Positions 4,501 through 55,165 are shown, counted from the stretch's first letter. The stretch: 64,000 nucleotides of DNA from Eukaryota sp. TZLM1-RC (GCA_040285825.1 JAUPSS010000001.1:3906001-3970000), one strand, 5' to 3'. The notes: generated by a model not told the origin, from the letters alone. Made by a program: numbers and translations.

Positions 4501-4639
4501 TACTGAAGGAGGGGGCAGGAAAAGCTTGGTCTGCGGTTAGTTGAGAAGAAGAGGGATCAGTCTCTTCTTCTAGGATCCTGCGTTGAGCCTCTGACGACCC
4601 AATACGTATTGATTGTCGTTGCTCGTTAGATTGCGACAT
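1546..4639 (-). pseudogene. gag: long gag with Pro/Ser-rich N-terminal extension, frameshifted
   Basis: ORFs 3472..4416, 3186..3563, 2618..3232 and 1356..2621 chain by single frameshifts. Restoring 1 nt near 1550 gives the zinc knuckle CNFCKQxRHPTERC. Candidate ATG at 4639 (MSQSNEQRQSIRIG) lies inside the LTR. Confidence 0.7.
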
Positions 4640-4757
4640 ACAATGTGAATGTAATGAAATTTATTACGAAGAGGAATTGTATTCTTTCTTCTTCAACTAA
4701 TAGGCGGAATACTAATAAACTATATAATTAAACTATAAATACTATTCAAGACTAACA
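4610..4757 (-). repeat. putative 5' LTR of the gypsy element (~148 bp, TGTT...ATCA)
   Basis: Starts TGTTAG exactly where the flanking non-LTR reading frame (..GMYENDL) breaks, contains TATA-like and AATAAA motifs, and ends ATCA like the small-element LTRs. The partner LTR is outside the window. Confidence 0.65.
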
Positions 4758-5107: not shown

Positions 5108-5178
5108 TCCCGTGTGGCGCAATTGTCAACGCATTCGACTCCATCGAAAGATTGTGGGTTCAAATCCCACTGCGGGAG
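5108..5178 (+). tRNA. degenerate tRNA with 5-nt anticodon loop (Arg CCG/CCT- or Trp CCA-like), probable pseudogene
   Basis: Cloverleaf: acceptor TCCCGTG/TGCGGGA, A-box TGGCGCAATTG, anticodon stem TTCGA/TCGAA with loop CTCCA, T-arm GTGGG-TTCAAAT-CCCAC, G discriminator. Confidence 0.75.
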
Positions 5179-6747: not shown

Positions 6748-7070
6748 TGTTGTTGTTACTGATGAACTAACTTGGTAGACAGATGAGGAATTTACATGAT
6801 GACGTGGCACTTGTTCAAGAACAAGTATTTTTATTAATACAGCTCTCTTTTCTCTCTTTACTTCTTTGGTATTTCTGCCTAACGGCATCAATAATTATTG
6901 GCCCTCATTGCAGATAATATCTACACGCGACCTTGGCGAATCTGACCATGAAGGCTGAGTCAGGCAATTTCAGTCCGGAAGCCCTGCTTTTCGCCTGAAG
7001 AAAACGTCTCAGGAAGCAGGACATACGTTCACGGACGTCGCCCTTACGGACATCAATCTTCAACTCAGAC
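6748..7070 (+). mobile_element. rearranged gag-only LTR element: 143-bp LTR, palindromic junction, inverted gag fragment
   Basis: TGTTGTTG...GGCATCA at 6748-6890, then CAATAATTATTG; 6930-7070 matches the gag of 14667..15380 on the minus strand. Confidence 0.8.
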
Positions 7071-7334
7071 ATGAAATGATAACCAAAGCATTGTTTTAGT
7101 GAGAAGGAAATGATGAAAATCGTCGACTCAAGAGATTTGCTGATTAAATACAAATTTATTTTAATTTAAATTTAATTTGTATTTAATTTGTATTGAAGAT
7201 ATTTAGTTCAAATTTGATTTAGTTTTAACAAAATCGTTTTTCAACAATAGAAAACCGTTTAGGTCTACAGTTCTACCTTTAAAACATACTTAGCCTCAAA
7301 CGTCCACAACATATTCATCTCAACACAGCTCCTC

Positions 7335-12540: not shown

Positions 12541-14484
12541 AACAGTAAATGGGTTTGTTGATAGAAGATGTTTGCAGCTTCTGGATTAACAACATAAATT
12601 ATAAACATAATAATCAAACTCAACATTATTAAAGTAACAATTTAAGACACAACATTCTGTATCTAAAGTGCAAATACCTAAACCACAAAAAACAACAAAA
12701 TAAAATACATTAAAATAACAATTTAAAACAAAATATAAACAAAGGAAACATCCCGTATCAAAGGTGATCAGCACCATATCTGATGTAACAGCACCCATAT
12801 CATGACTCACATAATGGCTGAAAAAAGTGCAATACTCTACCCCAACGGAAAAATCAGAACAATGATTCCGATAGGAAATCAAGGCTATCCTGTAAAACAG
12901 GATGACTGTTCCCGACTGAGGAGTTCGGGAGGAAGTACTCTGCTGTTCTTTGAAGAACAGGTTGAAGGAGGAGGTGGGAACTGAGTCCGTAACCTCGTCA
13001 TCCTTTTTCTCCTTTCGCTGCATGATGTCAGAAGAATGGGAAGAGTCAAGATAATCTCGCTGTCTGACACGATGCCTGACATGCTGATTGCGATTTCAAA
13101 TTCATTGCTTATTTCCACAATGGTATCAAATGCCTATCCACTGTATCTCTATTAGTGATCATCAACATCAGCTCGATTTACCCTCTAGCTCTTCTGGTCG
13201 TTGTTACTCCGTCTAAACTCTATGTTTTTTTCCAGTTTCCTTCTCCTTCCTTTACCTCTTGTTCTTTTCCCATTCAGCTATCTAAATAATTCTCTCTTCC
13301 AATCTCCCTCTCTATTTGGACGGGACCTAAACAAATGCTTATTTGGCCCAGAATCAACAAAATTCATAAGTGAGTAGATGGTCTATTGATTTCAGACGTC
13401 TCAAATTTACATGGACACAATGATGTTGAGTCCCCACACCTGGACCTAGTTGGATGTTTCACTTACAAAATCAGAGAACACAACAGAGACTGGTCATCTA
13501 TCTGAATGGAGAGACAGTAGGTGAGTAACCCTTTCAATTATCAGCAAAATCTGACAATTTATGTTGAAGCTTTTTACAACAAACCTGCAAATTAAAAAAA
13601 GATCGGTTTGGAATTTCTTGAATTGATTGGGGAAAACATTTGGTCCAGATTTGTGGTGGCAATCTATCGAGTTCACAAGATATCTCATTCAAATATGGAC
13701 TGCAGCTGGGAACTAACAGATGAGAATCTTCAGGAAATCTACGAGAAAATTCATAAATGAAGTTCTTGCCTCCACCCAATAATGCTGATTGACACAAAGT
13801 AGAAGATTTAGTAAATCCAAAATTACCCAAATTTGCTGAAGAAAATAAGTGATTTTTCAACACTTTTGGTTCTACAACCAATAAATCAGCAAGAAATCCG
13901 TTTTTGAATGAAGTTATGGAACGACAAAAAACTAATGCTATGGAAGGAGCGCAAGATCTCAAAACGATTGTTATTCTCCCAGTGTAGCAATTTTTAAGCA
14001 TGAAAATTTGAATATGTTTTTCTAAATCTAAAGAAGAATTTCAATCAAGGTTATTTTTCATTTTTTCCATTATAACTTGTAATTCATTCTAAATTCGAGG
14101 CACATTTTCTAACCCACAACCAAGAAACTTAAGAAAATCACTACTATAGTTAGTAATAGGGACAATTGTATCGTGTATCACAAGATCCTGAGCAGAAGGA
14201 CCATTCAGAAGGCATTTGCTCGCAATATGATGAAGCCCAACATTTTCATATGAATCAGCAATATCTTGTGCAAACAACTGCAGTAAATCAAATGAACCAA
14301 TCAAAAATATATCATCCATATAAGCAACTATTTTTAGGGAAGGGTGATTTTGCTTGATAACAACTAAAGTTTTGTGAATAGCTAAACAGAAGAATAATGG
14401 GCGTAAAGGATCACCTTGTTTTACACCAGAAGATGATTTTAAACCAAATGAATTAAATATTAAATCTGATGCTTTACCACAATA

Positions 14485-15584
14485 TGATGCCGTTAGGCAG
14501 AAATACCAAAGAAGTAAAGAGAGAAAAGAAGGTTTATTAATAGAAATACTTGTTTTTGAACAAGTGCCACGTCATCATGTAAATTCCTCATCTGTCTAGC
14601 AAGTTAGTTAATCAGTAACAACAACACTACTTCTTCCCATTTTCTTTCAACAGTTGCGTGAACCATTTAGCATAATGAAGAATGGGGATTTGTGAGATAC
14701 TGAGGCACGTGGCGTAAATGATTGACTTCGTGCTTAACTTTTGAGGGGCAATCACGAGCTAGATGACCTTTCTGGTGACATTTGAAACATGTCCCTTCAG
14801 TCAAATTGCGAGACCTATGGGATGAACGAGACTTCATACCAGCTTGACGCACAGAGTCGGTATTTTCAGAAACAGTCTTTGAAGACCTGTTCCAAGAAGC
14901 TACTCGCGTGCAATCAAGTAGTTCATCCTCTGCGGTATTTACCAATGTAGGAAAATCGGGGAATAACTCGTCCCGAATTCGAGAAATCAGAAATTTCTGC
15001 AGTCCTAATGGAAGAATACCCTTGGCGAATCTGATCATGAAGGCTGAGTCAGGCAATTTCAGTCCGGAAGTCCTGCTTTTCGCCTGAAAAAAACGTCTCA
15101 GGTAGCAGGACATACGTTCACGGACGTCGCCCTTACGGACATCAACCTTCAACTCAGACATCACCAAGTTGAATTCCTCGTACGAGGAAAACGAAGTGGA
15201 TGATCTTAAATGATCCAGAAACACCTCATCGGATGAATCGACTCTGAGTATTGTGAGAACCAATGATTCTAACAAGAAGGGGTCAACGAGGAGCCTTGCT
15301 GGAACAAGGTCCTTTTTCGGTGTAACAGAAGAGTACACCTTCCACTGTTGTAGGAACAACAGAACATCATCCACTTCCATAGAAGCAAATGACGGATGTA
15401 GTACGTGTGTAGATCACATCTGCAATGAGGGCCAATAATTATTGATGCCGTTAGGCAGAAATACCAAAGAAGTAAAGAGAGAAAAGAAGGTTTATTAATA
15501 GAAATACTTGTTTTTGAACAAATGCCACGTCATCATGTAAATTCCTCATCTGTCTAGCAAGTTAGTTAATCAGTAACAACAACA
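14485..15584 (-). mobile_element. 1.1-kb gag-only LTR element, type A
   Basis: 142-bp LTRs at 14485-14626 and 15443-15584 (1 mismatch); polypurine tract GAAAGAAAATGGGAAGAAGTAG; AATA TSD with the empty site visible near 49255; no pol. Confidence 0.93.
14667..15380 (-). CDS. gag: Gag-like protein with CCHC zinc knuckle, 237 aa
   Basis: CFKCHQKGHLARDC; the only substantial ORF between the LTRs. Confidence 0.85.
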   Translation of the reverse strand: MEVDDVLLFLQQWKVYSSVTPKKDLVPARLLVDPFLLESLVLTILRVDSSDEVFLDHLRSSTSFSSYEEFNLVMSELKVDVRKGDVRERMSCYLRRFFQAKSRTSGLKLPDSAFMIRFAKGILPLGLQKFLISRIRDELFPDFPTLVNTAEDELLDCTRVASWNRSSKTVSENTDSVRQAGMKSRSSHRSRNLTEGTCFKCHQKGHLARDCPSKVKHEVNHLRHVPQYLTNPHSSLC

Positions 15585-16811
15585 AATAGTGGTGGAAAAA
15601 ACTTGGCAGCTCAGGAAAATTAGATTTAATTACCACAAAAATTGCTTTTCGTTTTACAGAAATAAAAGCACTTTTGCAGTCCAGAATAAAAATAAAATTA
15701 TTATCCCCTTCGTAAAATCGTTTCTTCTTAATTGTATCAACAATGGTAATTCTTTGCAATGCTACAGCCATTACCTATTTTACAAACCCACCAAAGTTGA
15801 GGGTTTACCTAATATTGTTGTTTATATTTTTGGTTTTAACGACAACTTTTTTTCATTAACATTAATAGTAAGGTATTTGTTCAAGGATGAGTAGAATAAG
15901 TGATTTTTTTGGAAGATCAAATGCTCAAAACAATGTGACACTTGATTCTTTGATCGAACTAATATTGCAGAAGAGCCAATATATATTTGTTGTGTATCAA
16001 AGGGAACTCAGAATTATTATATTGGTCAAAGCTTCATTTAGTTTTTCAAAACAAGTAATCTGTATTCCACTATGTTGCAGCTTTTGTCAATTGTAGCAAT
16101 AACACCATTGATTGTTTTGAATGTTGATTTTTGGGGCATGTGTTGGTCACGTGTTTTTATTTCAAAAATAGTGGCGAAAACTGAACAAATTTGAAATTAA
16201 AAAGGATACCCTATTTCACTGGTCTGATAGTCGGCGATTTCAAACGCTCTGAAGAGTTTTATTCAATAACATGGCAGTCATCAAAAGAGTCATCAATCAT
16301 ATTCAAGCAGGTTTGAATAAATGATGAAATAAAACGGTTTACAGTCTCTGTGAAAATGTAATAGTTGTCAACCAAATCATTCAATAAACGACATGCACAC
16401 AGACAATTGGTAAGTCCCTTTTACTCAAAAGGAAGATTTAATGCATCACGTGATCAACAATAATAAAGTTCTCAGTATCAGAAGAATTTCTTAAAGTTGA
16501 TTGATTCAAAATTTACCCACTACTTTATTTTTGTTACAACAGAATTCATGAAATGATAACCAAAATACTGTTTTAATGAGGAAGAAATATAAAAGATCGT
16601 CGACTCAAGAGATTTGCTGATTAAATACAAATTTATTTTAATTTAAATTTAATTTGTATTTAATTTGTATTGAGGATATTTAGTTCAAATTTGATTTAGT
16701 TTCAACAAAATCGTTTTTCAACACTAGAAAACCGTTTAGGTCTACAGTTCTACCTTTAAAAGATACTTAGCCTCAAACGTCGACAACATATTCATCTCAA
16801 CACTGCTCCTC

Positions 16812-19319
16812 ATGGATGTTTCTGACGGCTTCTTAACGACACGAACATTGACGATCAATCAATTCGAACGCTTTCATAGAACTCTTTTGAGAGCATGGAA
16901 CCAAAACCAGAGAGTAGATGGAAGTGTTCTGTTTGGTGATCTTCTTCATCATTTTCAACAGCAGAAACTTGGTGAAGAAGCTAAGGATTTGTTGCTATTA
17001 GCTTTTGAAAAAGGAGTTTACGTTCACAAAGACATCCCATCATTTTACTCATATGTTACAGAACCCAAAGAACACATTATACTCACTTTTCGCACTGATG
17101 AGGGGGAACTGCGATTTGAAATTCAGAAAGAAGTACCCTCAACAGCTCAACCAATGAAAGGTACCTCATTCTCCATTATGAATGTGCCATATCAGAAGCC
17201 CAAGTTTTTTTACGAGTTTTCAACCCTTCTACTGAAGTATTTGGAACAAGAAGAACGTCTATTAGATAAGTATCATTCAAACGTTTTACCCTTTATCAAT
17301 TCAACAGGAACAGGTAAAACACGGTTTATGATTGAATCATGTAAGTCTATTCAGTCCAGAGATGATTTAGAAGCAGTATATTTCACGTTTCCTAGATTCT
17401 CAACGGAAGGTTCTGATTCTGTACTGAGGACAGAGCCTCTTGCTACTGCTGATTTCACTGGTTACTTCCGCAAGTTAATGTACAATGATTACACTGAAGA
17501 TAGAAAGCAAAGGGTCCGCCGTATTGTTTTTGCCTGCCAGTGTTTGATGGCTTCTGCCCTGAAACTTGGTCAAAGCTATCAGACTATGGAAAAGGAATAC
17601 TTTGAAACACTACCAACCAGTATGGTGAACAAGGCAGGAGAGCTGTTCACAACATATTATACTTCTTCAGATAATATTGCTCTCCAAACTACCAATATGT
17701 TGAATTCGCTATCCCTTTTAAATTCAACCAAATATGTTTTATTTTCAGATGAGGTTAGTTCACTTATTGGTACGAGTTTCGGATCTATTCGCACCAAAGC
17801 CTACTTTAACGAGGCTAGTGATGGTTTGGATTGTGATTGGAATTTCTTCCGTTGTTGGCGACATGCTGCTAGAAACTTACTCCTATCAGGAATACAACTG
17901 ATCGTAATTGTTGCTGGAACTCATACTGCTCTACATCACTTTTGTCATGATGTTGTCAAGTCCTTGTCTTATAGACCGTTTACACCTGGTAAAAATGACT
18001 ATATGGTGGATGAAGTACGCAGTGGTACTACTTTACCCCCAATCTCTACTGGTTGGGTTCAGATTTTTGATGATTTTCTCCCTCTAACCCGTACAAGTCC
18101 TGATGTTTCGCCATTACTTTCTCTAGTCAATGCAGCTTCTTGTAGGCCATTGTGGGTTGCGTATGCACGTGATTCGATCAATTGGGATTCTTTTGAACGT
18201 AAAATAGTTGAAAAAGCACAACACGCTTTCAGTGAAACCGATGTCGACCAGTACATGGCAGCCATACTTTCCGTCATTCTAGAAGGTACAGCAATCCATG
18301 AAACTGTGTTGACAAAGTTTGTCCATTGTACATTTGCCATGGTTGATTTTACTTGTGCTCATATTGGAACAGAGCAGAAGTACTTTTCGTTTCTGGTCCC
18401 AACTGTTGATCCATTGATTGCTCACTGTGGATGGCAGCTTCTCCTCCAGTTAAAGGATAATGAGTGGCAACATGAACTGACGAAGGTGCTGAGGGAATTG
18501 ATAAGCACGCATGTTGCACCAACTACCTTTGGAATCTTGGTTGAACCAATTGCAGTAGCATTGCTGCTTTTTTTGTTTCAATTCCAAAGATCTCAACAAC
18601 CACCAAATGATGTTAAATACTTTGTTAACTTGTATCCATTATTTTTGGAACATTTTTTGGTAGCATTTTGTACATCATATTACATACCCAAAGCACCCAG
18701 TGGTTGGACCTCTCCATGGGTTCTCTCAATTGCAGAATCAATGCTACTTCATGATAGGAGTGTTCTCACAGATAGCCAGTCTTTTTTCCATTTACTTTTA
18801 GGTGCATTCATTTTCAGAACGATCGTCATATTACCTGATAGAACTGAAGCCGTTGATGCAATCATTCCATTAGTTCGTTCTAACAATGATTCTTCAATCA
18901 GTCTTCCATCGCTCTTTACAATCCAATCAGCCATTGAAAGTGGTAATGGTCACCAGTATCTTGGATACGTCAAGATTCAAATCAAAACCTCTACGACAGT
19001 TTCAACGAAACGGGTCTTTCAAAGCCTACGTTCAACACATTTTGGGTCACAAGCATGCTATAGTGTATGTTTGCTCTTATCATTGGGTAATAGGAATGAT
19101 CTAACTGCACCAGAGTTAACCTCATATCAATCAAATGAAGATCCTAGGGTTTACGTGGCAGATGAAGCAAAGTTTTCCATTGTCAAACAGGCAGTTATGA
19201 CGTTGAAAAATGCCTTGGAGGTTCCTCAACACAAATTTCGAGTCAGAAACAACGGTGAAATTATTGATAAACCTTGGACTAAAGTAGAGAGCTTATCCCC
19301 TGAACATTCACCTAGTTAA
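16812..19319 (+). CDS. NTPase + REase-fold protein, copy 2, 835 aa
   Basis: Intact paralog of 7335..9836. Confidence 0.8.
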   Translation: MDVSDGFLTTRTLTINQFERFHRTLLRAWNQNQRVDGSVLFGDLLHHFQQQKLGEEAKDLLLLAFEKGVYVHKDIPSFYSYVTEPKEHIILTFRTDEGELRFEIQKEVPSTAQPMKGTSFSIMNVPYQKPKFFYEFSTLLLKYLEQEERLLDKYHSNVLPFINSTGTGKTRFMIESCKSIQSRDDLEAVYFTFPRFSTEGSDSVLRTEPLATADFTGYFRKLMYNDYTEDRKQRVRRIVFACQCLMASALKLGQSYQTMEKEYFETLPTSMVNKAGELFTTYYTSSDNIALQTTNMLNSLSLLNSTKYVLFSDEVSSLIGTSFGSIRTKAYFNEASDGLDCDWNFFRCWRHAARNLLLSGIQLIVIVAGTHTALHHFCHDVVKSLSYRPFTPGKNDYMVDEVRSGTTLPPISTGWVQIFDDFLPLTRTSPDVSPLLSLVNAASCRPLWVAYARDSINWDSFERKIVEKAQHAFSETDVDQYMAAILSVILEGTAIHETVLTKFVHCTFAMVDFTCAHIGTEQKYFSFLVPTVDPLIAHCGWQLLLQLKDNEWQHELTKVLRELISTHVAPTTFGILVEPIAVALLLFLFQFQRSQQPPNDVKYFVNLYPLFLEHFLVAFCTSYYIPKAPSGWTSPWVLSIAESMLLHDRSVLTDSQSFFHLLLGAFIFRTIVILPDRTEAVDAIIPLVRSNNDSSISLPSLFTIQSAIESGNGHQYLGYVKIQIKTSTTVSTKRVFQSLRSTHFGSQACYSVCLLLSLGNRNDLTAPELTSYQSNEDPRVYVADEAKFSIVKQAVMTLKNALEVPQHKFRVRNNGEIIDKPWTKVESLSPEHSPS

Positions 19320-21269
19320 TTTCAGGAATAAAGCTAAACTTTATCTTTTATTTAACAAACCCACACCAATTCTATGATGAGTGATTCTGAAGACTTTTTT
19401 TTGGTTACAATCCATTTACATACATCAATTGTTAAACTTGTGTTAAGTTCCCTAAATTGAAGCAGTGCACAAAGGTCACAATAAGAGACAGTCCATTTGA
19501 ATTGTCACACAAAATTCTTGAACAACATTAATAAACCTCAAAGACATCATCCATGTAATGTTATTGATTCACTACAATGCACTGTCTTGCTGCGGTTGAC
19601 AACAGAGCACCTGCGAATAGTTTCCTGCTCTTCCAACAAATAGTAATAGTGATTTCTTGCTGTACTGCTCACTCGTTCAGGTAGAGACCTCTTCTGTCTA
19701 CGATGTCCTTCCACTATGTAGCCCTCCTCCTTGTTTGCCCGATCACATCTCCTGAACTTTGAACGAATAGAAGTTTGTGCTGGAGAGAACTGCCCACGAT
19801 TTAAGGAGGAAAACACGGTCATGCATGATCTGTTTATATCAGGGGGTGTAATGTGAAGGATCACGCTTCTAACCAGAACCACTCCATGCAGTGGTTTTCA
19901 ACCGAAATTGAGTCTGTTCCATCCATTATGGACCACCCTTATGCTCTCTTGAATGGGCCCTTTTAACATTTTGAATAATTTTCCTTGCTTCAACTCTGGT
20001 TGATTCCCTTAGAAGTCGGCTCAAAAATGATTAATTCAGTTTAAGAATTAACCAAATTTGTTTTCTCACTTGCTGTTGTTTATTCTTGAAATGGCTGACT
20101 CCGATCAATCGGTCAATTTGCACTTGGTTGCTGTTAACTTTTCCATTGAATTTCTATTTATTTTTATTTTTATTCTCTATTTAACTGTTTTAATCGTTTT
20201 TTCTTAATTTCATCATCAGTGGTATTTTTTGGCAACAGTACAATTATAATTTTTTTAATAACAAACCCACCAAAGTTGAGGGTTTAACTAATATTGTTGT
20301 TTATATTTGTGGCCATAACGGTATTTATATTACATTAACACTAATGGTAAAGTATTTGTTCAAGGATGAGTAGAATAAGTGAATTACATGGAAGATCAAC
20401 TGCTCAAAACAATGTCATATTTCATTTTTGATCGAATTAATGTTGCAGAAGAGCCAATTAATCAAATCGAATGATGGCTACTGAAATACCTATATTATGC
20501 TTCATTGCATAACTATCTTCGTAAAAATCACTTATTCTGCTCAACTTACCCCACACAAAAACTTTACCATTGTTGTCAATGTCAGCATAAATACCATTGT
20601 GACCACTAATAGAAACCACATTAGTTAAACCTTGAACTTTGATGGGTTTGTTATTAATAGAAGTTGCATTCAGTATTCTAAAACTGTTCATTTTCACATA
20701 CTCATTGGATGAATTTTTTTGTCAGTAGATTGGTTTGTTTTTCTTCAATGATTCAAATGTATGATCATTCTCTTTAATGTTGTTGGTGTAAAGAATTTTT
20801 TAAAAACGAAGAACTAAGTTTACTAAGTATGAGCTTATGTATAATTCGATCAGGTAAGTGCGGTATACCTCTTAATTTTAATTAAGTTTGGTTAAACAAA
20901 TGAATACCTTTTTGGCTTCATACGACAAAGTAGGGTTTATCAACACGTTGTCGATCAATAATTAGATTGAATTATATCACCTCTTAACACAATCGCTGCA
21001 TCATCAATCATGCAACATAAACTTAAAAAAGAAAAAACATTCCTCTGTTGTATATCGTTTGCTTAAATTAAATTTAGAAATTATTAAATAATTCCATTTG
21101 TTTTTGAGTGACAGAAATTATAGGAACAACAAACATGTAAACTCATCTACGTTAAAAAACCCATTGGTGAATGTACTAGAAACAAGAACAGCTCCACAGA
21201 ATGAAGTATAAATACCCACAAAGCTAAAACAGACCAAAAAACACTAAAGAATTAAATACAGGGAAACCC

Positions 21270-23852: not shown

Positions 23853-24952
23853 TGATGCCGTTAGGCAGAAATACCAAAGAAGTAAAGAGAGAAAAGAAGG
23901 TTTATTAATAGAAATACTTGTTTTTGAACAAGTGCCACGTCATCATGTAAATTCCTCATCTGTCTAGCAAGTTAGTTAATCAGTAACAACAACACTACTT
24001 CTTCCCATTTTCTTTCAACAGTTGCGTGAACCATTTAGCATAATGAAGAAAAGGGATTTGTGAGATACTGAGGCACGTGGCGTAAATGATTGACTTCGTG
24101 CTTAACTTTTGAGGGGCAATCACGAGCTAGATGACCTTTCTGGTGACATTTGAAACATGTCCCTTCAGTCAAATTGCGAGACCTATGGGATGAACGAGAC
24201 TTCATACCAGCTTGACGCACAGAGTCGGTATTTTCAGAAACAGTCTTTGAAGACCTGTTCCAAGAAGCTACTCGCGTGCAATCAAGTAGTTCATCCTCTG
24301 CGGTATTTACCAATGTAGGAAAATCGGGGAATAACTCGTCCCGAATTCGAGAAATCAGAAATTTCTGCAGTCCTAATGGAAGAATACCCTTGGCGAATCT
24401 GATCATGAAGGCTGAGTCAGGCAATTTCAGTCCGGAAGTCCTGCTTTTCGCCTGAAGAAAACGTCTCAGGTAGCAGGACATACGTTCACGGACGTCGCCC
24501 TTACGGACATCAACCTTCAACTCAGACATCACCAAGTTGAATTCCTCGTACGAGGAAAACGAGGTGGATGATCTTAAATGATCCAGAAACACCTCATCGG
24601 ATGAATCGACCCTGAGTATTGTGAGAACCAATGATTCTAACAAGAAGGGGTCAACGAGGAGCCTTGCTGGAACAAGGTCCTTTTTCGGTGTAACAGAAGA
24701 GTACACCTTCCACTGTTGTAGGAACAACAGAACATCATCCACTTCCATAGAAGCAAATGACGGATGTAGTACGTGTGTAGATCACATCTGCAATGAGGGC
24801 CAATAATTATTGATGCCGTTAGGCAGAAATACCAAAGAAGTAAAGAGAGAAAAGAAGGTTTATTAATAGAAATACTTGTTTTTGAACAAATGCCACGTCA
24901 TCATGTAAATTCCTCATCTGTCTAGCAAGTTAGTTAATCAGTAACAACAACA
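23853..24952 (-). mobile_element. gag-only LTR element type A, duplicate
   Basis: Same LTRs and AATA TSD at offset 9368. Confidence 0.93.
24035..24748 (-). CDS. gag: Gag-like CCHC protein, duplicate
   Basis: Near-identical to 14667..15380. Confidence 0.85.
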   Translation of the reverse strand: MEVDDVLLFLQQWKVYSSVTPKKDLVPARLLVDPFLLESLVLTILRVDSSDEVFLDHLRSSTSFSSYEEFNLVMSELKVDVRKGDVRERMSCYLRRFLQAKSRTSGLKLPDSAFMIRFAKGILPLGLQKFLISRIRDELFPDFPTLVNTAEDELLDCTRVASWNRSSKTVSENTDSVRQAGMKSRSSHRSRNLTEGTCFKCHQKGHLARDCPSKVKHEVNHLRHVPQYLTNPFSSLC

Positions 24953-28691: not shown

Positions 28692-31600
28692 TTTCAAAAA
28701 TAGAGCTAAACTCTGTCTTTTACTTAACAAACCCACACTAATTCTATGGTGGCAGGTTCTGAAGACTTGTTTTTGTTGCAATAAATTTATATACATCAAT
28801 TGTTAAACTTGTGTTAAGTTCCCTAAATTGAAGCAGTATCGCAATAAGAGTAATAGTTTAGTTGAATTGACACTCAAAATTCTTCAACAGCATTAATATA
28901 CATTGTAGACATCATCCATAATGCGGTTGACAACAGAGCACCTGTGAATGGTTTTCAGCTCTTCCAACAAATTCTCTTACGGAATCATCAACCTAATTTC
29001 TAAAGGTAAATAAATGTTTGCAATTTAACAAAAGAGTCATTGTACTTTTTCAACATTATTTGCAAATTGAATTATGAACTAAATACTCAAGCCAAATAAA
29101 GGAGCGAAGTCTCTTATTCAGGGTCCAGGCAAACAAGTGCAAGAAGAATTGGTCTGTAGAAACACTCTTTGGAACTCAACAATTTCGAAATGATGTTGTT
29201 CCGTATCTTAATCAAATATTATTCAAGGAAAAGTGCAGAAATTGACATAATGTGGGAAACTAAATCAGTATTTATTGATTTAACTTTCATTAGTTCCGGA
29301 TGGTGGATGATATCAAGTTCATATGATGACAAGCCGTTATGGTAATTTTGAGAAGTAATTAAGATAATACAAATAATCAAATATAATTTTTCCGTGGATC
29401 AGTGTAATGCAAAGTAAAACAACATCAAAGCACAATTGGAAAACCCAGTCGGACAGTATGAATCAATTCAATATCTATTGCAAAAAAAACTAGAAGATAT
29501 CCTTTTGCCGAAAATCTTCTTGAAACTACAAATAGCCTATTCCTCGATAACTTAAGAGAGAAATATCCAGTTTATCTCCCGACTTATGGCAATCATGTTT
29601 CCCCATATCCATTCAAGAAATTCCAGACAGAAGTTTGTATTCATTAAAATTTGCGTTGAAAAAGCTTCAACGACATCTTTTGAAAAAATTTGAAAGCAAG
29701 GATTTTATTGTTCGACTTAGCACGGCTAAGAAAGAAAATCCTGCTTTTGCAAATCTTTTGATTGATTTGAAGGACAGTTCATCTGCAGTTTTGATAAATC
29801 AAATTCCCCAGATTTAGGGCCTATTTTTGAATGACGACCAATGGACCACTGCTATGAGAATGCGTTGTTATTTATGGCCTTGTAATTTGCCCAATGATTT
29901 GTTTTGCAAATGTGGAGCTTGTTTGACATTATCACATTTATTGAATTGTAATAGATTTATTTCCTATCGTTCTACGTTGCATGATGCAGTCAGAGATCAA
30001 ATCCATGCAATGTGTAATTCCTATCATATTGAATCTTTTGTAGAACCTTTGCTGAGGTCTCTTGATATAAATGAAAGCGTAAGAGATTCAGAATATGGAA
30101 AACGACGTGCTGATGTTGTTGTGCCCTCGTTTGATGATGTCATGAATGTTGTTGATGTCGTAACAGTGGATGTTTGCAAGAAAAATACCTTGAAAAATGC
30201 TCAATCCGAAGTATCCCCCCTTGATGACTCCGAATTGTACAAACGGAAAAAAATATGCAAATCCTTTAAAAGAATTGAAACATGTTCGTCATGTAGATTA
30301 CCAAATTTGCCCATTTGCTATATCGTTGTATGGTCGTCTTGGAAATAATGCTATGAATTTTATTGATGATTTTGAAAATCTTGTGAAAAGGAGAGTGAAT
30401 AAGCGTTTTGATCGTCGCTTGTGGCTAAATCGTATTGTTTTTACTATTTTCAAATCAATTCCTAAATTGATTTCGAAAGCTTTGATGTCTGTCAGTGCAC
30501 ATTACGAAGAAATTGCTGTTGTGAGGTTTGATGGTGTGGAAGCTTGTTTTGAAGATATTGATTTTTAGACTGTAGTTTAGTAATAAATTAAATACCTAAA
30601 AAAATGTGGTTACCAAAATGTAAATTAAAATATGTGCAATATGTTGATTGAAAATACGGTATTAATTCCGGCATATATTGCAATAGAGCACCATGGATAC
30701 TGCGACGACTTAGTGAATTGAAAGCATTACTAAAAATCCAATGACATACAAACATTGGATTCATTTTGGCGAAATAAAACATCAGTAGCAAAAATCGCTG
30801 AAGAGACTCCATCTGTAGTATTTATACCATATTGAAAGGGTAATAAAATCTTTTTAGCTTTTTCATTGAACCTGCTTAAGCAACACGCAGAAAAAAATAT
30901 TGTGTAAGCTCTCAGAGACTGCAATAGGACGAACATCCATTTTTGAATTTTTGACAAGTGCAGTCAAACGAGAACTTCTTAATTCTTCTGGGTATTTGAG
31001 TTGACCAGATAATATTTGGTTGAAAAATTTGGTCAATAAACCAAGGCAATCTTCTGAAGAAATAATCGCGGCTTTTACATGATCAATAGTAATACCAGAA
31101 AGTCCGGCAGACTTACCACGTGGTCTCTTTTTGATAACCGAAAAAACTTCTGATGGCATCAATGGATAATTTTCCCAGTATGTGCCGTAAAAATTTTGAT
31201 CCATTATAGGGTCTTCATAAGGATGAAGTATTTTTAATTTATCTATTGTATTTTCATTGTTGGGTGCTTTAACTCCGGGGCTTAAAGCTGACAAAGCCTT
31301 GGACCATTTGTTGTCAAAGCATTTGTCTTCAAAAATTTTACTTAATTTCTCGGAAAAAAGCTGCTACATTATACCAATCCATAGGTCTTGAGTTGAATGT
31401 TCAAAAATGTTTTTGTATTTCTAGGAAAATGTTAAGTTAATAATTAATTCCCTTGAAGTTCCATATATTGATTATACTTCAACTAGTTTCTGCTTTCTTG
31501 GTTGCTATTTAGGTTCCGCCGAAAAAACACTTGATAGCCTTGAAAATTATTTAAATTCAATTAAAAAAGAGCTAGAAGTCATAAAGACTCTTGAATTGGA

Positions 31601-34600
31601 AAAACATCTTAAGTTTTTTCTTTTGAAAATTTGTTATGCTGGAAAATTACTCATTTACTGCGATCATTACCTCCATCCCTAACTTACAATTTTTGTAGAC
31701 AATTTAACAAAATACGTACCCAATTTTTGGCTTATTTAATGTCGGTTGATCCATCAATTTTGAAAAATCATATTTTTTCTGATGTTCAACTTGGCGGTGT
31801 TGGATTCAATTCATCAAAATATTTGACCAAAGCTGCATTTATTGGTGGTGGAAAAAATTTTGTATTTGAATTCTCCAGAAGATATCCTTTGCCGAAAATC
31901 TTCTCGAAACTACAAATAGCCTATTCCTCGATAACTTAAGAGAAGAAATTTCCAGTTTATCTCCCGACTTATGGCAATCATGTTTCCCCATATCCATTCA
32001 AGAAATTCCAGACAGAAGTTTGTATTCATTAAAATTTGCGTTGAAAAAGCTCCAACGACATCTTTTGAAAAAATTTGAAAGCAAGGATTTTATTGTTCGA
32101 CTTAGCACGGCTAAGAAAGAAAATCCTGCTTTTGCCAATTTTTTGATTGATTTGAAGGACAGTTCATCTGCAGTTTTGATAAATCAAATTCCCCAGATTT
32201 ATGGTCTATTTTTGAATGACGACCAATGGACCACTGCTATGAGAATGCGCTGTTATTTATGGCCTTGTAATTTGCCCAATGATTTGTTTTGCAAATGTGG
32301 AGCTTGTTTGACATTATCACATTTATTGAATTGTAATAGATTTATTTCCTATCGTTCTACGTTGCATGATGCAGTCAGAGATCAAATCCATGCAATGTGT
32401 AATTCCTATCATATTGAATCTTTTGTAGAACCTTTGCTGAGGTCTCTTGATATAAATGAAAGCGTAAGAGATTCAGAATATGGAAAACGACGTGCTGATG
32501 TTGTTGTGCCCTCGTTTGATGATGTCATGAATGTTGTTGATGTCGTAACAGTGGATGTTTGCAAGAAAAATACCTTGAAAAATGCTCAATCCGAAGTATC
32601 CCCCCTTGATGACTCCGAATTGTACAAACGGAAAAAATATGCAAATCCTTTAAAAGAATTGAAACATGTTCGTCATGTAGATTACCAAATTTGCCCATTT
32701 GCTATATCGTTGTATGGTCGTCTTGGAAATAATGCTATGAATTTTATTGATGATTTTGAAAATCTTGTGAAAAGGAGAGTGAATAAGCGTTTTGATCGTC
32801 GCTTGTGGCTAAATCGTATTGTTTTTACTATTTTCAAATCAATTCCTAAATTGATTTCGAAAGCTTTGATGTCTGTCAGTGCACATTACGAAGAAATTGC
32901 TGTTGTGAGGTTTGATGGTGTGGAAGCTTGTTTTGAAGATATTGATTTTTAGACTGTAGTTTAGTAATAAATTAAATACCTAAAAAAATGTGGTTACCAA
33001 AATGTAAATTAAAATATGTGCAATATGTTGATTGAAAATACGGTATTAATTCCGGCATATATTGCAATAGAGCACCATGGATACTGCGACGACTTAGTGA
33101 ATTGAAAGCATTACTAAAAATCCAATGACATACAAACATTGGATTCATTTTGGCGAAATAAAACATCAGTAGCAAAAATCGCTGAAGAGACTCCATCTGT
33201 AGTATTTATACCATATTGAAAGGGTAATAAAATCTTTTTAGCTTTTTCATTGAACCTGCTTAAGCAACACGCAGAAAAAATATTGTGTAAGCTCTCAGAG
33301 ACTGCAATAGGACGAACATCCATTTTTGAATTTTTGACAAGTGCAGTCAAACGAGAACTTCTTAATTCTTCTGGGTATTTGAGTTGACCAGATAATATTT
33401 GGTTGAAAAATTTGGTCAATAAACCAAGGCAATCTTCTGAAGAAATAATCGCGGCTTTTACATGATCAATAGTAATACCAGAAAGTCCGGCAGACTTACC
33501 ACGTGGTCTCTTTTTGATAACCGAAAAAACTTCTGATGGCATCAATGGATAATTTTCCCAGTATGTGCCGTAAAAATTTTGATCCATTATAGGGTCTTCA
33601 TAAGGATGAAGTATTTTTAATTTATCTATTGTATTTTCATTGTTGGGTGCTTTAACTCCGGGGCTTAAAGCTGACAAAGCCTTGGACCATTTGTTGTCAA
33701 AGCATTTGTCTTCAAAAATTTTACTTAATTTCTCGGAAAAAAGCTGCTACATTATACCAATCCATAGGTCTTGAGTTGAATGTTCAAAAATGTTTTTGTA
33801 TTTCTAGGAAAAATGTTAAGTTAATAATTAATTCCCTTGAAGTTCCATATATTGATTATACTTCAACTAGTTTCTGCTTTCTTGGTTGCTATTTAGGTTC
33901 CGCCGAAAAAACACTTGATAGCCTTGAAAATTATTTAAATTCAATTAAAAAAGAGCTAGAAGTCATAAAGACTCTTGAATTGGAAAAACATCTTAAGTTT
34001 TTTCTTTTGAAAATTTGTTATGCTGGAAAAATTACTCATTTACTGCGATCATTACCTCCATCCCTAACTTACAATTTTTGTAGACAATTTAACAAAATAC
34101 GTACCCAATTTTTGGCTTATTTAATGTCGGTTGATCCATCAATTTTGAAAAATCATATTTTTTCTGATGTTCAACTTGGCGGTGTTGGATTCAATTCATC
34201 AAAATATTTGACCAAAGCTGCATTTATTGGTGGTGGAAAAAATTTTGTATTTGAATTCTCCAGAAGATATCCTTTGCCGAAAATCTTCTCGAAACTACAA
34301 ATAGCCTATTCCTCGATAACTTAAGAGAAGAAATTTCCAGTTTATCTCCCGACTTATGGCAATCATGTTTCCCCATATCCATTCAAGAAATTCCAGACAG
34401 AAGTTTGTATTCATTAAAATTTGCGTTGAAAAAGCTCCAACGACATCTTTTGAAAAAATTTGAAAGCAAGGATTTTATTGTTCGACTTAGCACGGCTAAG
34501 AAAGAAAATCCTGCTTTTGCCAATTTTTTGATTGATTTGAAGGACAGTTCATCTGCAGTTTTGATAAATCAAATTCCCCAGATTTATGGTCTATTTTTGA

Positions 34601-35356
34601 ATGACGACCAATGGACCACTGCTATGAGAATGCGCTGTTATTTATGGCCTTGTAATTTGCCCAATGATTTGTTTTGCAAATGTGGAGCTGGTTTGACATT
34701 ATCACATTTATTTAATTGTAATAGATTTATTTCCTATCGTTCTACGTTGCATGATGCAGTCAGAGATCAAATCCATGCAATGTGTAATTCCTATCATATT
34801 GAATCTTTTGTAGAACCTTTGTTGAGGTCTCTTGATATAAATGAAAGCGTAAGAGATTCAGAATATGGAAAACGACGTGCTGATGTTGTTGTGCCCTCGT
34901 TTGATGATGTCATGAATGTTGTTGATGTCGTAACAGTGGATGTTTGCAAGAAAAATGCCTTGAAAAATGCTCAATCCGAAGTATCCCCCCTTGATGACTC
35001 CGAATTGTACAAACGGAAAAAATATGCAAATCCTTTAAAAGAATTGAAACATGTTCGTCATGTAGATTACCAAATTTGCCCATTTGCTATATCGTTGTAT
35101 GGTCGTCTTGGAAATACTGCTATGAATTTTATTGATGATTTTGAAAATCTTGTGAAAAGGAGAGTGAATAAGCGTTTTGATCGTCGCTTGTGGCTAAATC
35201 GTATTGTTTTTACTATTTTCAAATCAATTCCTAAATTGATTTCGAAAGCTTTGATGTCTGTCAGTGCACATTACGAAGAAATTGCTGTTGTGAGGTTTGA
35301 TGGTGTGGAAGCTTGTTTTGAAGATATTGATTTTTAGACTGTAGTTTAGTAATAAA

Positions 35357-36061
35357 TTAAATACCTAAAAAAATGTGGTTACCAAAATGTAAATTAAAAT
35401 ATGTGCAATATGTTGATTGAAAATACGGTATTAATTCCGGCATATATTGCAATAGAGCACCATGGATACTGCGACGACTTAGTGAATTGAAAGCATTACT
35501 AAAATCCAATGACATACAAACATTGGATTCATTTTGGCGAAATAAAACATCAGTAGCAAAAATCGCTGAAGAGACTCCATCTGTAGTATTTATACCATAT
35601 TGAAAGGGTAATAAAATCTTTTTAGCTTTTTCATTGAACCTGCTTAAGCAACACGCAGAAAAAATATTGTGTAAGCTCTCAGAGACTGCAATAGGACGAA
35701 CATCCATTTTTGAATTTTTGACAAGTGCAGTCAAACGAGAACTTCTTAATTCTTCTGGGTATTTGAGTTGACCAGATAATATTTGGTTGAAAAATTTGGT
35801 CAATAAACCAAGGCAATCTTCTGAAGAAATAATCGCGGCTTTTACATGATCAATAGTAATACCAGAAAGTCCGGCAGACTTACCACGTGGTCTCTTTTTG
35901 ATAACCGAAAAAACTTCTGATGGCATCAATGGATAATTTTCCCAGTATGTGCCGTAAAAATTTTGATCCATTATAGGGTCTTCATAAGGATGAAGTATTT
36001 TTAATTTATCTATTGTATTTTCATTGTTGGGTGCTTTAACTCCGGGGCTTAAAGCTGACAA
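35357..36061 (-). pseudogene. inverted RT N-terminal segment (paralogs at 30588-31350 and 32972-33735)
   Basis: RT subdomains 0-3; ends before the QGDPL and YxDD motifs. Confidence 0.85.
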
Positions 36062-36364
36062 AGCCTTGGACCATTTGTTGTCAAAGCATTTGTCTTCAAA
36101 AATTTTACTTAATTTCTCGGAAAAAAGCTGCTACATTATACCAATCCATAGGTCTTGAGTTGAATGTTCAAAAATGTTTTTGTATTTCTAGGAAAAATGT
36201 TAAGTTAATAATTAATTCCCTTGAAGTTCCATATATTGATTATACTTCAACTAGTTTCTGCTTTCTTGGTTGCTATTTAGGTTCCGCCGAAAAAACACTT
36301 GATAGCCTTGAAAATTATTTAAATTCAATTAAAAAAAGAGCTAGAAGTCATAAAGACTCTTGAA

Positions 36365-37723
36365 TTGGAAAAACATCTTAAGTTTTTTCTTTTGAAAATT
36401 TGTTATGCTGGAAAAATTACTCATTTACTGCGATCATTACCTCCATCCCTAACTTACAATTTTTGTAGACAATTTAACAAAATACGTACCCAATTTTTGG
36501 CTTATTTAATGTCGGTTGATCCATCAATTTTGAAAAATCATATTTTTTCTGATGTTCAACTTGGCGGTGTTGGATTCAATTCATCAAAATATTTGACCAA
36601 AGCTGCATTTATTGGTGGTGGAAAAAATTTTGTATTTGAATTCTCCAGAAGATATCCTTTTGCCGAAAATCTTCTCGAAACTACAAATAGCCTATTCCTC
36701 GATAACTTAAGAGAAGAAATTTCCAGTTTATCTCCCGACTTATGGCAATCATGTTTCCCCATATCCATTCAAGAAATTCCAGACAGAAGTTTGTATTCAT
36801 TAAAATTTGCGTTGAAAAAGCTCCAACGACATCTTTTGAAAAAATTTGAAAGCAAGGATTTTATTGTTCGACTTAGCACGGCTAAGAAAGAAAATCCTGC
36901 TTTTGCCAATTTTTTGATTGATTTGAAGGACAGTTCATCTGCAGTTTTGATAAATCAAATTCCCCAGATTTATGGTCTATTTTTGAATGACGACCAATGG
37001 ACCACTGCTATGAGAATGCGCTGTTATTTATGGCCTTGTAATTTGCCCAATGATTTGTTTTGCAAATGTGGAGCTGGTTTGACATTATCACATTTATTTA
37101 ATTGTAATAGATTTATTTCCTATCGTTCTACGTTGCATGATGCAGTCAGAGATCAAATCCATGCAATGTGTAATTCCTATCATATTGAATCTTTTGTAGA
37201 ACCTTTGTTGAGGTCTCTTGATATAAATGAAAGCGTAAGAGATTCAGAATATGGAAAACGACGTGCTGATGTTGTTGTGCCCTCGTTTGATGATGTCATG
37301 AATGTTGTTGATGTCGTAACAGTGGATGTTTGCAAGAAAAATGCCTTGAAAAATGCTCAATCCGAAGTATCCCCCCTTGATGACTCCGAATTGTACAAAC
37401 GGAAAAAATATGCAAATCCTTTAAAAGAATTGAAACATGTTCGTCATGTAGATTACCAAATTTGCCCATTTGCTATATCGTTGTATGGTCGTCTTGGAAA
37501 TACTGCTATGAATTTTATTGATGATTTTGAAAATCTTGTGAAAAGGAGAGTGAATAAGCGTTTTGATCGTCGCTTGTGGCTAAATCGTATTGTTTTTACT
37601 ATTTTCAAATCAATTCCTAAATTGATTTCGAAAGCTTTGATGTCTGTCAGTGCACATTACGAAGAAATTGCTGTTGTGAGGTTTGATGGTGTGGAAGCTT
37701 GTTTTGAAGATATTGACTTTTAG
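36365..37723 (+). CDS. RT C-terminal region + restriction-like endonuclease of a non-LTR element (longest intact piece; paralogs at 32020, 34405, 29635-30568)
   Basis: CxC...HxxxC knuckle, HD, E, RAD, D, KxxKY motifs of RLE domains. Confidence 0.8.
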   Translation: MEKHLKFFLLKICYAGKITHLLRSLPPSLTYNFCRQFNKIRTQFLAYLMSVDPSILKNHIFSDVQLGGVGFNSSKYLTKAAFIGGGKNFVFEFSRRYPFAENLLETTNSLFLDNLREEISSLSPDLWQSCFPISIQEIPDRSLYSLKFALKKLQRHLLKKFESKDFIVRLSTAKKENPAFANFLIDLKDSSSAVLINQIPQIYGLFLNDDQWTTAMRMRCYLWPCNLPNDLFCKCGAGLTLSHLFNCNRFISYRSTLHDAVRDQIHAMCNSYHIESFVEPLLRSLDINESVRDSEYGKRRADVVVPSFDDVMNVVDVVTVDVCKKNALKNAQSEVSPLDDSELYKRKKYANPLKELKHVRHVDYQICPFAISLYGRLGNTAMNFIDDFENLVKRRVNKRFDRRLWLNRIVFTIFKSIPKLISKALMSVSAHYEEIAVVRFDGVEACFEDIDF

Positions 37724-37929
37724 ACTGTAGTTTAACAATAAATTAAAATTATCAAAAAAAAATAACTCTTCAAAGTTCTTGGTTACTCTTGAAATTCCCA
37801 TTTCCACAAAAATGTTGCTCGAATTCTCTTTTGACCTGAACAGCAGGAACTTCCAAAGGTCAGAAGCTGCGCTTGTCAGATGTCATTACGATGCATGAAG
37901 ACTCTCCTTCCATCAGTGACTATTATTCA

Positions 37930-45518: not shown

Positions 45519-46350
45519 TGTTGTTGTCGAACTTAAATTGAATTAGTAGGTTTCTATGTATTTTGACTGATGACGTGATACTCGTTTATGAATCAGTTTT
45601 ATTAATAAACTTAGATTTCTCTCTCTCCCCTTCGTGTGTTCATCTGCCTAACGGCATCAATAATTATTGGCCCTTCTTATTTCAGATGACTGTTCCCTCT
45701 GTTAACCTGACGTCTCTTTCTTCCATGGAAGTTGAAAGTGTTCTTCTGTTCCTATAGAAGTAAAAGATTTATTCTTCGGTGACTCCTAAGAAAGAGCTTG
45801 TTCCAGCAAGACTCTTAGTCGATTCTTTTCTGTTAGAGTCCCTATCTCTCCAGAAATCCGACGTCTCATCCAGTGACGATGTTCTTCTCAAACATCTACA
45901 ATCTGTCGTATCGTTCGTCACGTACGAAGATTGTAGTCTGGCTATGTCAGAACTGAAGCTTGATGTCCGTATTGGTGACGTCCGAGAACGCATGTCCTGT
46001 TACCTGCGATGTTTCCTCCAGGTAAAAAGTAGGGCTTTCGGACTGAAGTTGCCAGACATAGCTTTTCTGAACCGATTTGCCAGAGGAATTCTTCCCGTAG
46101 GTCTCCAACGTTCTCATACCAACGATGCACCGGAGAATTTAACAAACATCATATCTTCCCTCTATTGAGCCAGTACTGTATTTGTCCTCAGAAAAATGGA
46201 AAAAAGTAGTGTTGTTGTCGAACTTAAATTGAATTAGTAGGTTTCTATGTATTTTGACTGATGACGTGATACTCGTTTATGAATCAGTTTTATTAATAAA
46301 CTTAGATTTCTCTCTCTCCCCTTCTTGTGTTCATCTGCCTAACGGCATCA
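45519..46350 (+). mobile_element. 832-bp gag-only LTR element, type B, decayed gag
   Basis: 141-bp LTRs at 45519-45659 and 46210-46350; PPT; TSD TATA/TAAA against the empty paralogous site CTG-TAAA-CCG; gag with stops and no knuckle. Confidence 0.9.
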
Positions 46351-47248: not shown

Positions 47249-47390
47249 TGTTATAGTTACTGATAAATAAGGTTAGCAGTTATCTCAGGATTTCACTTGA
47301 TGACGTGGCACTCGTTGAAAAATGGGTTTCTTTATTAATAAACGCTCTTTTCTCTCTTTACTTCTTGGGTATTTCTGCCTAACGGCATCA
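47249..47390 (+). mobile_element. solo LTR (142 bp) with AATT TSD; duplicate at 56066-56207
   Basis: TGTT...CCTAACGGCATCA flanked by AATT on both sides. Confidence 0.9.
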
Positions 47391-54333: not shown

Positions 54334-55165
54334 TGTTGTTGTCGAACTTAAATTGAATTAGTAGGTTTCTATGTATTTTGACTGATGACGTGATACTCGT
54401 TTATGAATCAGTTTTATTAATAAACTTAGATTTCTCTCTCTCCCCTTCGTGTGTTCATCTGCCTAACGGCATCAATAATTATTGGCCCTTCTTATTTCAG
54501 ATGACTGTTCCCTCTGTTAACCTGACGTCTCTTTCTTCCATGGAAGTTGAAAGTGTTCTTCTGTTCCTATAGAAGTAAAAGATTTATTCTTCGGTGACTC
54601 CTAAGAAAGAGCTTGTTCCAGCAAGACTCTTAGTCGATTCTTTTCTGTTAGAGTCCCTATCTCTCCAGAAATCCGACGTCTCATCCAGTGACGATGTTCT
54701 TCTCAAACATCTACAATCTGTCGTATCGTTCGTCACGTACGAAGATTGTAGTCTGGCTATGTCAGAACTGAAGCTTGATGTCCGTATTGGTGACGTCCGA
54801 GAACGCATGTCCTGTTACCTGCGATGTTTCCTCCAGGTAAAAAGTAGGGCTTTCGGACTGAAGTTGCCAGACATAGCTTTTCTGAACCGATTTGCCAGAG
54901 GAATTCTTCCCGTAGGTCTCCAACGTTCTCATACCAACGATGCACCGGAGAATTTAACAAACATCATATCTTCCCTCTATTGAGCCAGTACTGTATTTGT
55001 CCTCAGAAAAATGGAAAAAAGTAGTGTTGTTGTCGAACTTAAATTGAATTAGTAGGTTTCTATGTATTTTGACTGATGACGTGATACTCGTTTATGAATC
55101 AGTTTTATTAATAAACTTAGATTTCTCTCTCTCCCCTTCGTGTGTTCATCTGCCTAACGGCATCA
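54334..55165 (+). mobile_element. gag-only LTR element type B, duplicate
   Basis: Copy at offset 8815. Confidence 0.9.

Follow-up and report, generated by a model that had tools for sequence, protein, structure and literature searches.

A covarying palindrome at the primer-binding position of Ty3/gypsy and gag-only LTR elements in three protist genomes: a candidate site for priming without tRNA

The start of reverse transcription is a defining step of every retroelement, and the solutions to priming it that we know of are few, namely the 3′ end of a tRNA, a tRNA fragment and the fold-back of Tf1. A 64,000-nt stretch of DNA from Eukaryota sp. TZLM1-RC (GCA_040285825.1 JAUPSS010000001.1:3906001-3970000), referred to here as the window, raises the question of how this step is carried out by LTR elements whose 5′ LTR runs directly into a palindrome at the position of the primer-binding site (PBS). 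A first-pass annotation of the window had read this palindrome as a candidate tRNA-independent priming system shared by two LTR families. What stands after comparison with relatives is a self-complementary element at the primer-binding position that is under selection and independent of a tRNA-type TGG; the two families do have unlike gags, but they are two branches of one lineage with an inherited feature and not unrelated systems. That the palindrome is the PBS of these elements and works without a tRNA is a serious possibility, if one somewhat short of even, and self-pairing of the site in trans is a plausible, and the best available, reading of how it would do so.

In gag-only element A (14485-15584, minus strand), the 5′ LTR of 142 nt (15443-15584, TG..CA) contributes its last two bases, CA, to the 12-nt palindrome CAATAATTATTG (15433-15444), whose core ATAATTAT occupies +1 to +8 after the LTR. 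The element further contains an ORF for a Gag of 237 amino acids with a CCHC zinc knuckle (14667-15380) and a polypurine tract (14627-14647) directly before the 3′ LTR (14485-14626), which ends in CA and is followed by the 4-bp target-site duplication (TSD) TATT; the two LTRs, both of 142 nt, are 99.3% identical. Element B (45519-46350, plus strand) has the same build, with a 5′ LTR of 141 nt (45519-45659), the palindrome CAATAATTATTG at 45658-45669 and a 3′ LTR at 46210-46350. Both elements have a twin, that of A at 23853-24952 (minus strand, palindrome at 24801-24812) and that of B at 54334-55165 (plus strand, palindrome at 54473-54484), and an LTR with palindrome also survives in a rearranged A-type copy (6748-6900, plus strand, palindrome at 6889-6900). 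A gypsy element on the minus strand, whose gag, protease and reverse transcriptase (RT) extend to the left edge of the window, carries the palindrome CAATACGTATTG (4600-4611) at the end of a 5′ LTR of 148 nt (4610-4757).

Searched across the window, CAATAATTATTG has five exact matches, starting at 6889, 15433, 24801, 45658 and 54473 (0.01 expected), CAATACGTATTG has the single match at 4600, and the relaxed pattern CAATANNTATTGG finds the same six sites and none other. All six adjoin short TG..CA LTRs of 141-148 nt and lie at the junction of 5′ LTR and leader, just where the first-pass annotation had placed them. It had, however, counted the five CAATAATTATTG sites as separate cases, and only three independent insertions lie behind them, because 15433/24801 are twins within a 9.37-kb segmental duplication and 45658/54473 twins within one of 8.8 kb. 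The rearranged copy occupies, in the first 9.4-kb repeat unit, the place where units 2 and 3 hold the intact element; at 6748-7072 its 5′ LTR and about 40 nt of leader, in sense orientation, are joined at 6931 to an antisense gag fragment of 142 nt that is 96% identical to 15020-15161. Other features of the window are a tRNA-Gly(TCC) gene (5108-5178), separated from the gypsy 5′ LTR by about 350 nt, four repeats of a 2385-bp unit with 98-100% identity (29500-37760) and a tandem array of about 10 copies of a 78-79-bp unit (59962-60783).

The position of the LTR end is critical to any reading of the site. That the LTR ends in the CA that opens the palindrome follows from the 3′ LTRs with their 4-bp TSDs, from a solo LTR of a third subtype (47249-47390, plus strand, TSD AATT, twin at 56066-56207), which ends in CA and passes directly into its TSD, with no palindrome, and from an empty-site paralogue, present in contigs of public runs, that skips 14480-15589. 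Among the matches listed between such contigs and the window, no variant letters fall within the palindrome. The 3′ LTR of the gypsy element lies outside the window, beyond the left edge, and its boundary at 4610 was therefore read from relatives; it agrees with the earlier placement, the same end being found at L005 (both LTRs, TSD TGAT) and at L007 (a tandem LTR-internal-LTR arrangement). The direct TG..CA LTRs, the short TSDs (4 bp in eight insertions), the polypurine tract before the 3′ LTR and the pol order protease, RT, RNase H, integrase (Pfam; window ORFs and the products of L007, L009 and L010) are those of Ty3/gypsy elements.

How far the feature extends was judged from relatives. 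The gag-only protein has 36 relatives, all annotated in TZLM1-RC, GEM-RC1 and TZLM3-RCL. From the use of the names Skoliomonas sp. GEMRC and RCL in Williams et al. 2024, we take the three assemblies (GCA_040285825.1, GCA_040285855.1 and GCA_040285805.1) to be the Skoliomonas genomes of that study, Skoliomonas being an anaerobic protist of the Metamonada; retrotransposons are not treated there (Williams et al. 2024). The window gypsy gag and the full pol of a relative, used as queries, revealed many further families in the same three genomes, and a metagenome scan with the gag-only alignment yielded no confirmed relative. Twelve loci were fetched from the relatives (named with the prefix L), LTR pairs were defined by self-alignment, and family LTR ends were fixed through the 3′ LTR and 4-bp TSD wherever both LTRs were present. 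The result is ten families in three Skoliomonas species, comprising one Ty3/gypsy clade and its gag-only dependants; the latter lack pol and must be non-autonomous. In the comparison for an autonomous partner, the gag-only Gag resembled that of the P0105 family only distantly (E 1e-7) and was unlike that of the window gypsy element and unlike P0110 beyond the zinc knuckle.

An 8-nt palindrome, ATAATTAT, ATACGTAT, ATGATCAT or TTAATTAA, occupies +1 to +8 after the LTR in all ten families and is usually lengthened to 12 nt by CA and TG on its two sides. After the LTR's CA, the core ATAATTAT is followed by TGGCCCT in the gag-only families A and B of TZLM1-RC and in gag-only L002 of GEM-RC1, by TGTGCC in gag-only L003 and by TGTCC in L012, an autonomous gypsy element with a CCHC gag, the last two also from GEM-RC1. 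Among the gypsy elements, ATACGTAT is followed by TGGGTCGTC in the window element and L007 (TZLM1-RC) and by TGGCCTTC in L010 (TZLM3-RCL), ATGATCAT by TGCTCTG in L009 (GEM-RC1), and TTAATTAA by TGG in the L011 family (TZLM1-RC; full-length copy at L008:17391). Every occurrence of the four 12-mers in about 330 kb lies at an LTR/leader junction.

Several further observations were made on these loci. Tandem LTR-internal-LTR-internal-LTR arrays are present at L001:9835-11902 (gag-only) and at L007:8055-15453 and beyond (gypsy). At L012, the 3′ LTR of the same minus-strand gypsy element, with the same flank, occurs twice inside a plus-strand gypsy element (13123-13231 and 19625-19735), and these two identical insertions of LTR and flank indicate a duplicated nested insertion in GEM-RC1. 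The gag-only LTRs (window 15520-15535 and 45568-45580; L002 and L003) share a CRE/bZIP-like motif, TGACGTGG or TGACGTCA, with an AATAAA-like box about 35-40 nt further downstream. The form in L008 is TGACGTGA and that in L009 just ACGTGG; in the LTRs of the window gypsy element, L007, L010, L011 and L012 the motif is not evident. Motif and box are probably the signals for promoter and poly(A) function, accommodated in LTRs of only 90-150 nt.

What distinguishes the palindrome from a merely conserved sequence is the way in which it varies. An anchored, gap-free alignment of 24 columns over the ten families gives 60 cells for the six palindrome pairs, of which 59 are complementary; the single unpaired cell belongs to a deleted copy at L011. 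Three of the six pairs show double-sided changes (A:U to U:A, A:U to G:C and A:U to C:G), and no one-sided change occurs in any of the six in this alignment, so that the one compensatory change first noticed in the window has grown to three across ten families and three species. None of 500 shuffles matched the observed pairing or covariation score, and sliding the partner by 1 to 3 columns lowers pairing to 22-55%. In the pol tree, the six autonomous families form one clade with 100/100 support, the two families with ACGT cores split off at its base, which leaves the TTAATTAA, GATC and AATT cores as derived; this placement makes the three double changes separate events within one inherited feature. 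That independent compensatory events number only these three counts against the primer-site reading.

Conservation and decay both favour the primer-site reading. Five families, from two species, have the same 12-mer; in comparison with family A, their gags show only 51-64% identity and their LTRs about 72% identity or no alignment at all. Decayed palindromes are found in old copies, CAATACCTATCG at L005 (LTRs 94.6% identical) and CAATACGTATTT at L006. In the autonomous gypsy elements, an ORF seems to start at an ATG in U5 (ATGTC... or ATGGA...) and to read through the palindrome (window 4640-4600; L007:8170-8215; L010:8177-8220; L009:7031-7060; L008:17512), which would give Gag a long low-complexity N-terminal extension; since the frame across the palindrome differs by family, its conservation is not accounted for by protein coding.

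Covariation falls on the pairs 5/8 and 6/7 of the 12-mer. The loop that these would enclose within one strand is of 2 or 0 nt, too short for any hairpin; the pairing would therefore be between two molecules, or else the site is a symmetric double-stranded one. The second option would be a DNA or RNA site for a dimeric element protein, integrase or Gag, with half-sites that co-evolve with the protein. A palindromic form is typical where dimers bind, the outer CAAT/ATTG hardly varies, and the gag-only elements share their core with one autonomous family, L012, all of which would suit such a site. We nevertheless regard it as improbable, as all positions are strictly complementary, including the central two, whereas the centres of protein sites are usually loose, and as the flanking bases also show compensatory pairing, from GG..CC to AC..GT, which fits a helix better. 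A protein site lying half inside an LTR end would, moreover, have no known role.

If the palindrome pairs as RNA, a partner within the element itself would be the simplest arrangement, and none was found. The first-pass annotation had seen no complement inside the LTRs, and the wider search agrees: the longest exact complement to the junction in an LTR is of 5-7 nt, at inconsistent positions, and none reaches 8 nt. A cis fold-back of the Tf1/sushi type was rejected, there being no complement of about 11 nt at the transcript start in the LTRs. No near-copy with up to three mismatches lies 12-41 bp downstream, where fungal GalEa elements carry a second box (CHSeq2), in the ten complete elements searched. 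Among the four intact small gag-only copies, which have the same core, none occurs anywhere in A, B or L003, and L002 has one near-copy with three mismatches, at +434. In the deleted copy at L011, a 12-mer with three mismatches, 11 nt downstream, is the only nearby match, and the other matches with two or three mismatches, in the 6-7-kb gypsy elements, are few and hundreds of nt away. As no second box is present in the Skoliomonas elements, the pairing would have to be intermolecular, and the clean covariation together with the lack of a partner in cis narrows the mechanism to pairing between two molecules.

Ordinary tRNA priming has to be weighed at this point, with a family-specific tRNA annealing to a TGG at +9, behind an 8-nt spacer, and integrase trimming the extra bases. 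TGG is present at +9 in seven of the ten families, where a tRNA may anneal, and families of LTR elements often differ in the tRNA that they use. The TGG 8 nt from the LTR end is thus real in the window, as first described, but it is not conserved: L003, L009 and L012 read TGT or TGC instead and lack any TGG within about 16 nt, and in no family does it fall at the canonical distance of about 0-5 nt from the LTR. Beyond +10 the sequence is family-specific, in line with the divergence after TGG noted earlier. One host tRNA gene, the Gly-TCC gene of the window, was available for comparison and showed no match to the junction by eye; none was found in the 12 further loci (about 265 kb). Priming by tRNA would also leave the covarying palindrome unexplained, and the removal of 8 nt at 3′ processing would be unusual.

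A copy at L011 (9926-9937) also counts against this reading. It is an internal-deletion derivative that lacks about 680 nt present in a full-length relative (compared at L008:17525-17536), and its deletion starts exactly at +9, so that only the 8-nt core is kept; everything from +9 on is lost, yet its LTRs are 100% identical and it is flanked by the TSD GAGG. This copy may have gone through one round of copying with nothing but the core, or its break may have occurred at the cut site proposed below. Taken together, these points make priming by a tRNA at +9 quite unlikely in our view.

Predicted folding is consistent with pairing between two RNAs. For nine of the ten families, the homodimer of the 24-mer is predicted at -15 to -27 kcal/mol and the monomer hairpin at -0.4 to -5.6 kcal/mol; for the deleted L011 copy the two values are -6.8 and 0 kcal/mol. 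In the predicted monomer folds, the palindrome is itself the stem, closed by a 4-nt loop. Single-sequence folds disagree with one another and show no conserved secondary structure across families, and Rfam yielded nothing relevant. A short flanking helix does recur, as GGC-AT-palindrome-GCC and, in the gypsy branch, as GAC(C)..(G)GTC, but it is only 67% paired.

A strong predicted homodimer, self-complementarity and covariation are equally what is predicted for a dimerisation site, and palindromic sites of this kind are well known in retroviruses and Ty1. The palindrome might thus serve solely in dimer linkage or packaging, in the manner of the retroviral DIS or the PAL of Ty1, with something else that anneals nearby acting as primer. 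We hold this to be unlikely, though not to be dismissed lightly. No other conserved candidate for a primer site exists, given the family-specific sequence beyond +10 and the three families without TGG; all families have their palindrome beginning at +1, a constancy that dimerisation alone would not require; and the known DIS palindromes lie in hairpin loops downstream of a separate PBS.

The reading that we favour gives the pairing a direct part in priming. Two genomic RNAs would pair through the palindrome, and one strand would be cut between +8 and +9, presumably by the RNase H of the element, as in Tf1. The resulting 3′ end (...CAAUAAUUAU, -2 to +8) would stay paired to +1 to +10 of the partner and would then be extended, the first added bases being the complement of the LTR's CA, so that the minus strand would begin at -1, joined to RNA ending in ...AUAAUUAU. 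The model predicts cleavage at +8/+9 and cDNA that is attached to element RNA. The LTR end and the cut site would then mirror each other, which would account for a centre of symmetry that is always 4 nt beyond the LTR and for new copies that end exactly at CA. Such trans self-priming, in which RNAs pair via an 8-12-nt palindrome at the U5 border, are cut 4 nt past its centre and use the 5′ fragments as primers on the partner, is put forward as a tentative model that may well be wrong.

Two considerations concern the origin of the primer. In the established scheme for LTR elements, U5 ends where the minus-strand primer has its 3′ end. As all 3′ LTRs stop at CA, the primer must pair from +1, that is, with the palindrome, unless integrase trims 8 nt; and as the four cores cannot match one host RNA, the primer should, on the same assumption about the U5 end, be encoded by the element. 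This need would also be answered by a separate small element RNA, an antisense or degradation product that carries the palindrome, in place of cleaved genomic RNA, since any transcript across the site, from either strand, contains the same self-complementary sequence. A defined 3′ end at +8 would be needed all the same, and we give this variant little credence. Against the model of cleaved genomic RNA it must be said that nothing obvious in it halts plus-strand copying far into the long RNA primer.

One family departs from the pattern and also counts against the primer-site reading. In the P0105 family, which is basal, the single copy seen (L008:9859-9945 and 17012-17096) has no palindrome at its 5′ junction; its LTR ends disagree, the LTRs being identical for 72 nt and different in the last 9 nt. 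Its 3′ end, GGCAACA-TTAGTT-TGTTGCC-AACA, repeats the end of the LTR in inverted form over 7 nt and is followed by the TSD ATTC, and CAGTAATTACTG lies about 100 nt downstream of the 5′ junction, inside gag. As the TSD ATTC sets the right end after ...TTGCCAACA, the 5′ junction of this one copy may be rearranged.

The matter has some practical bearing. Standard LTR annotation tools, which seek a tRNA PBS within 5 nt, will miss or misjudge families of this kind, and the 1.1-kb gag-only elements offer a compact natural substrate for work in vitro. Should trans self-priming be true, it would add another way of priming the minus strand to those known from LTR retroelements, a prospect that we regard as possible but doubtful.

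Among known systems, one for comparison is Tf1 of S. pombe, whose transcript folds its first 11 nt back onto the PBS and whose self-primer is freed by an RNase H cut. Like the Skoliomonas elements, those of the Tf1/sushi type belong to Ty3/gypsy; they have no tRNA PBS, as is proposed for the Skoliomonas elements too, and the Tf1 primer is the element's own RNA at the U5 border, in a duplex of about 10-11 bp. The two differ in that the Skoliomonas site is self-complementary and has no complementary sequence in the LTR. The retroviral DIS (GCGCGC or GUGCAC in HIV-1) and the PAL of Ty1 are short 5′ palindromes through which two genomic RNAs pair, and here too palindromy is kept by symmetric changes between lineages. 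These, however, lie in a hairpin loop or in the leader and are accompanied by a tRNA PBS, whereas the Skoliomonas palindrome takes the position of the PBS and straddles the LTR end; nor do its predicted folds offer a kissing loop, the palindrome being stem, and no separate PBS was found. In Skipper of Dictyostelium, a polypyrimidine tract replaces the PBS and unconventional priming has been proposed (PMC5006619). Skipper shares with our elements a chromovirus-type gypsy lineage, the loss of the TGG PBS and the lack of an LTR complement, but has a polypyrimidine run and not a palindrome.

The closest precedent is the 'Conserved Hairpin Site' of the fungal GalEa copia elements, which have no PBS and carry this palindromic site after the 5′ LTR (Donnart et al. 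2017, PMC5445492); a paper on bivalve TRIM elements notes similar repeats (PMC6934838). The novelty first claimed for the Skoliomonas site was to that extent overstated, as a palindrome at the same place was already known, although a palindrome in place of a PBS had been reported only this once, and with the mechanism left open (PMC5445492), and we found no description in the literature of such a site in gypsy elements or metamonads. The GalEa box is of 9 bp, CTGATCAGT or CTAATTAGT, variants that differ by a compensatory change, and is palindromic together with the last A of the LTR; a further complementary box, CHSeq2, lies 12-41 bp downstream, so that a hairpin can form in cis (PMC5445492). 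A palindrome directly after the LTR, inclusion of the base or bases at the LTR end and compensatory variants are thus all found in both, and in the same coordinates both have an 8-nt palindrome at +1 to +8, with its centre 4 nt past the LTR. They differ in that the Skoliomonas carriers are, by domain order and homology, Ty3/gypsy elements of a distant protist lineage, the metamonads, and GalEa is Ty1/copia and fungal; in that CHSeq2 has no counterpart at 12-41 bp in Skoliomonas; and in that the Skoliomonas palindrome takes in two LTR bases (12 nt) and that of GalEa one (10 nt). As judged from the sequences compared, the geometry of the palindrome is common to two superfamilies and two eukaryotic supergroups, and if the model set out above is true, the geometry of GalEa would imply that trans self-priming arose at least twice or is ancient.
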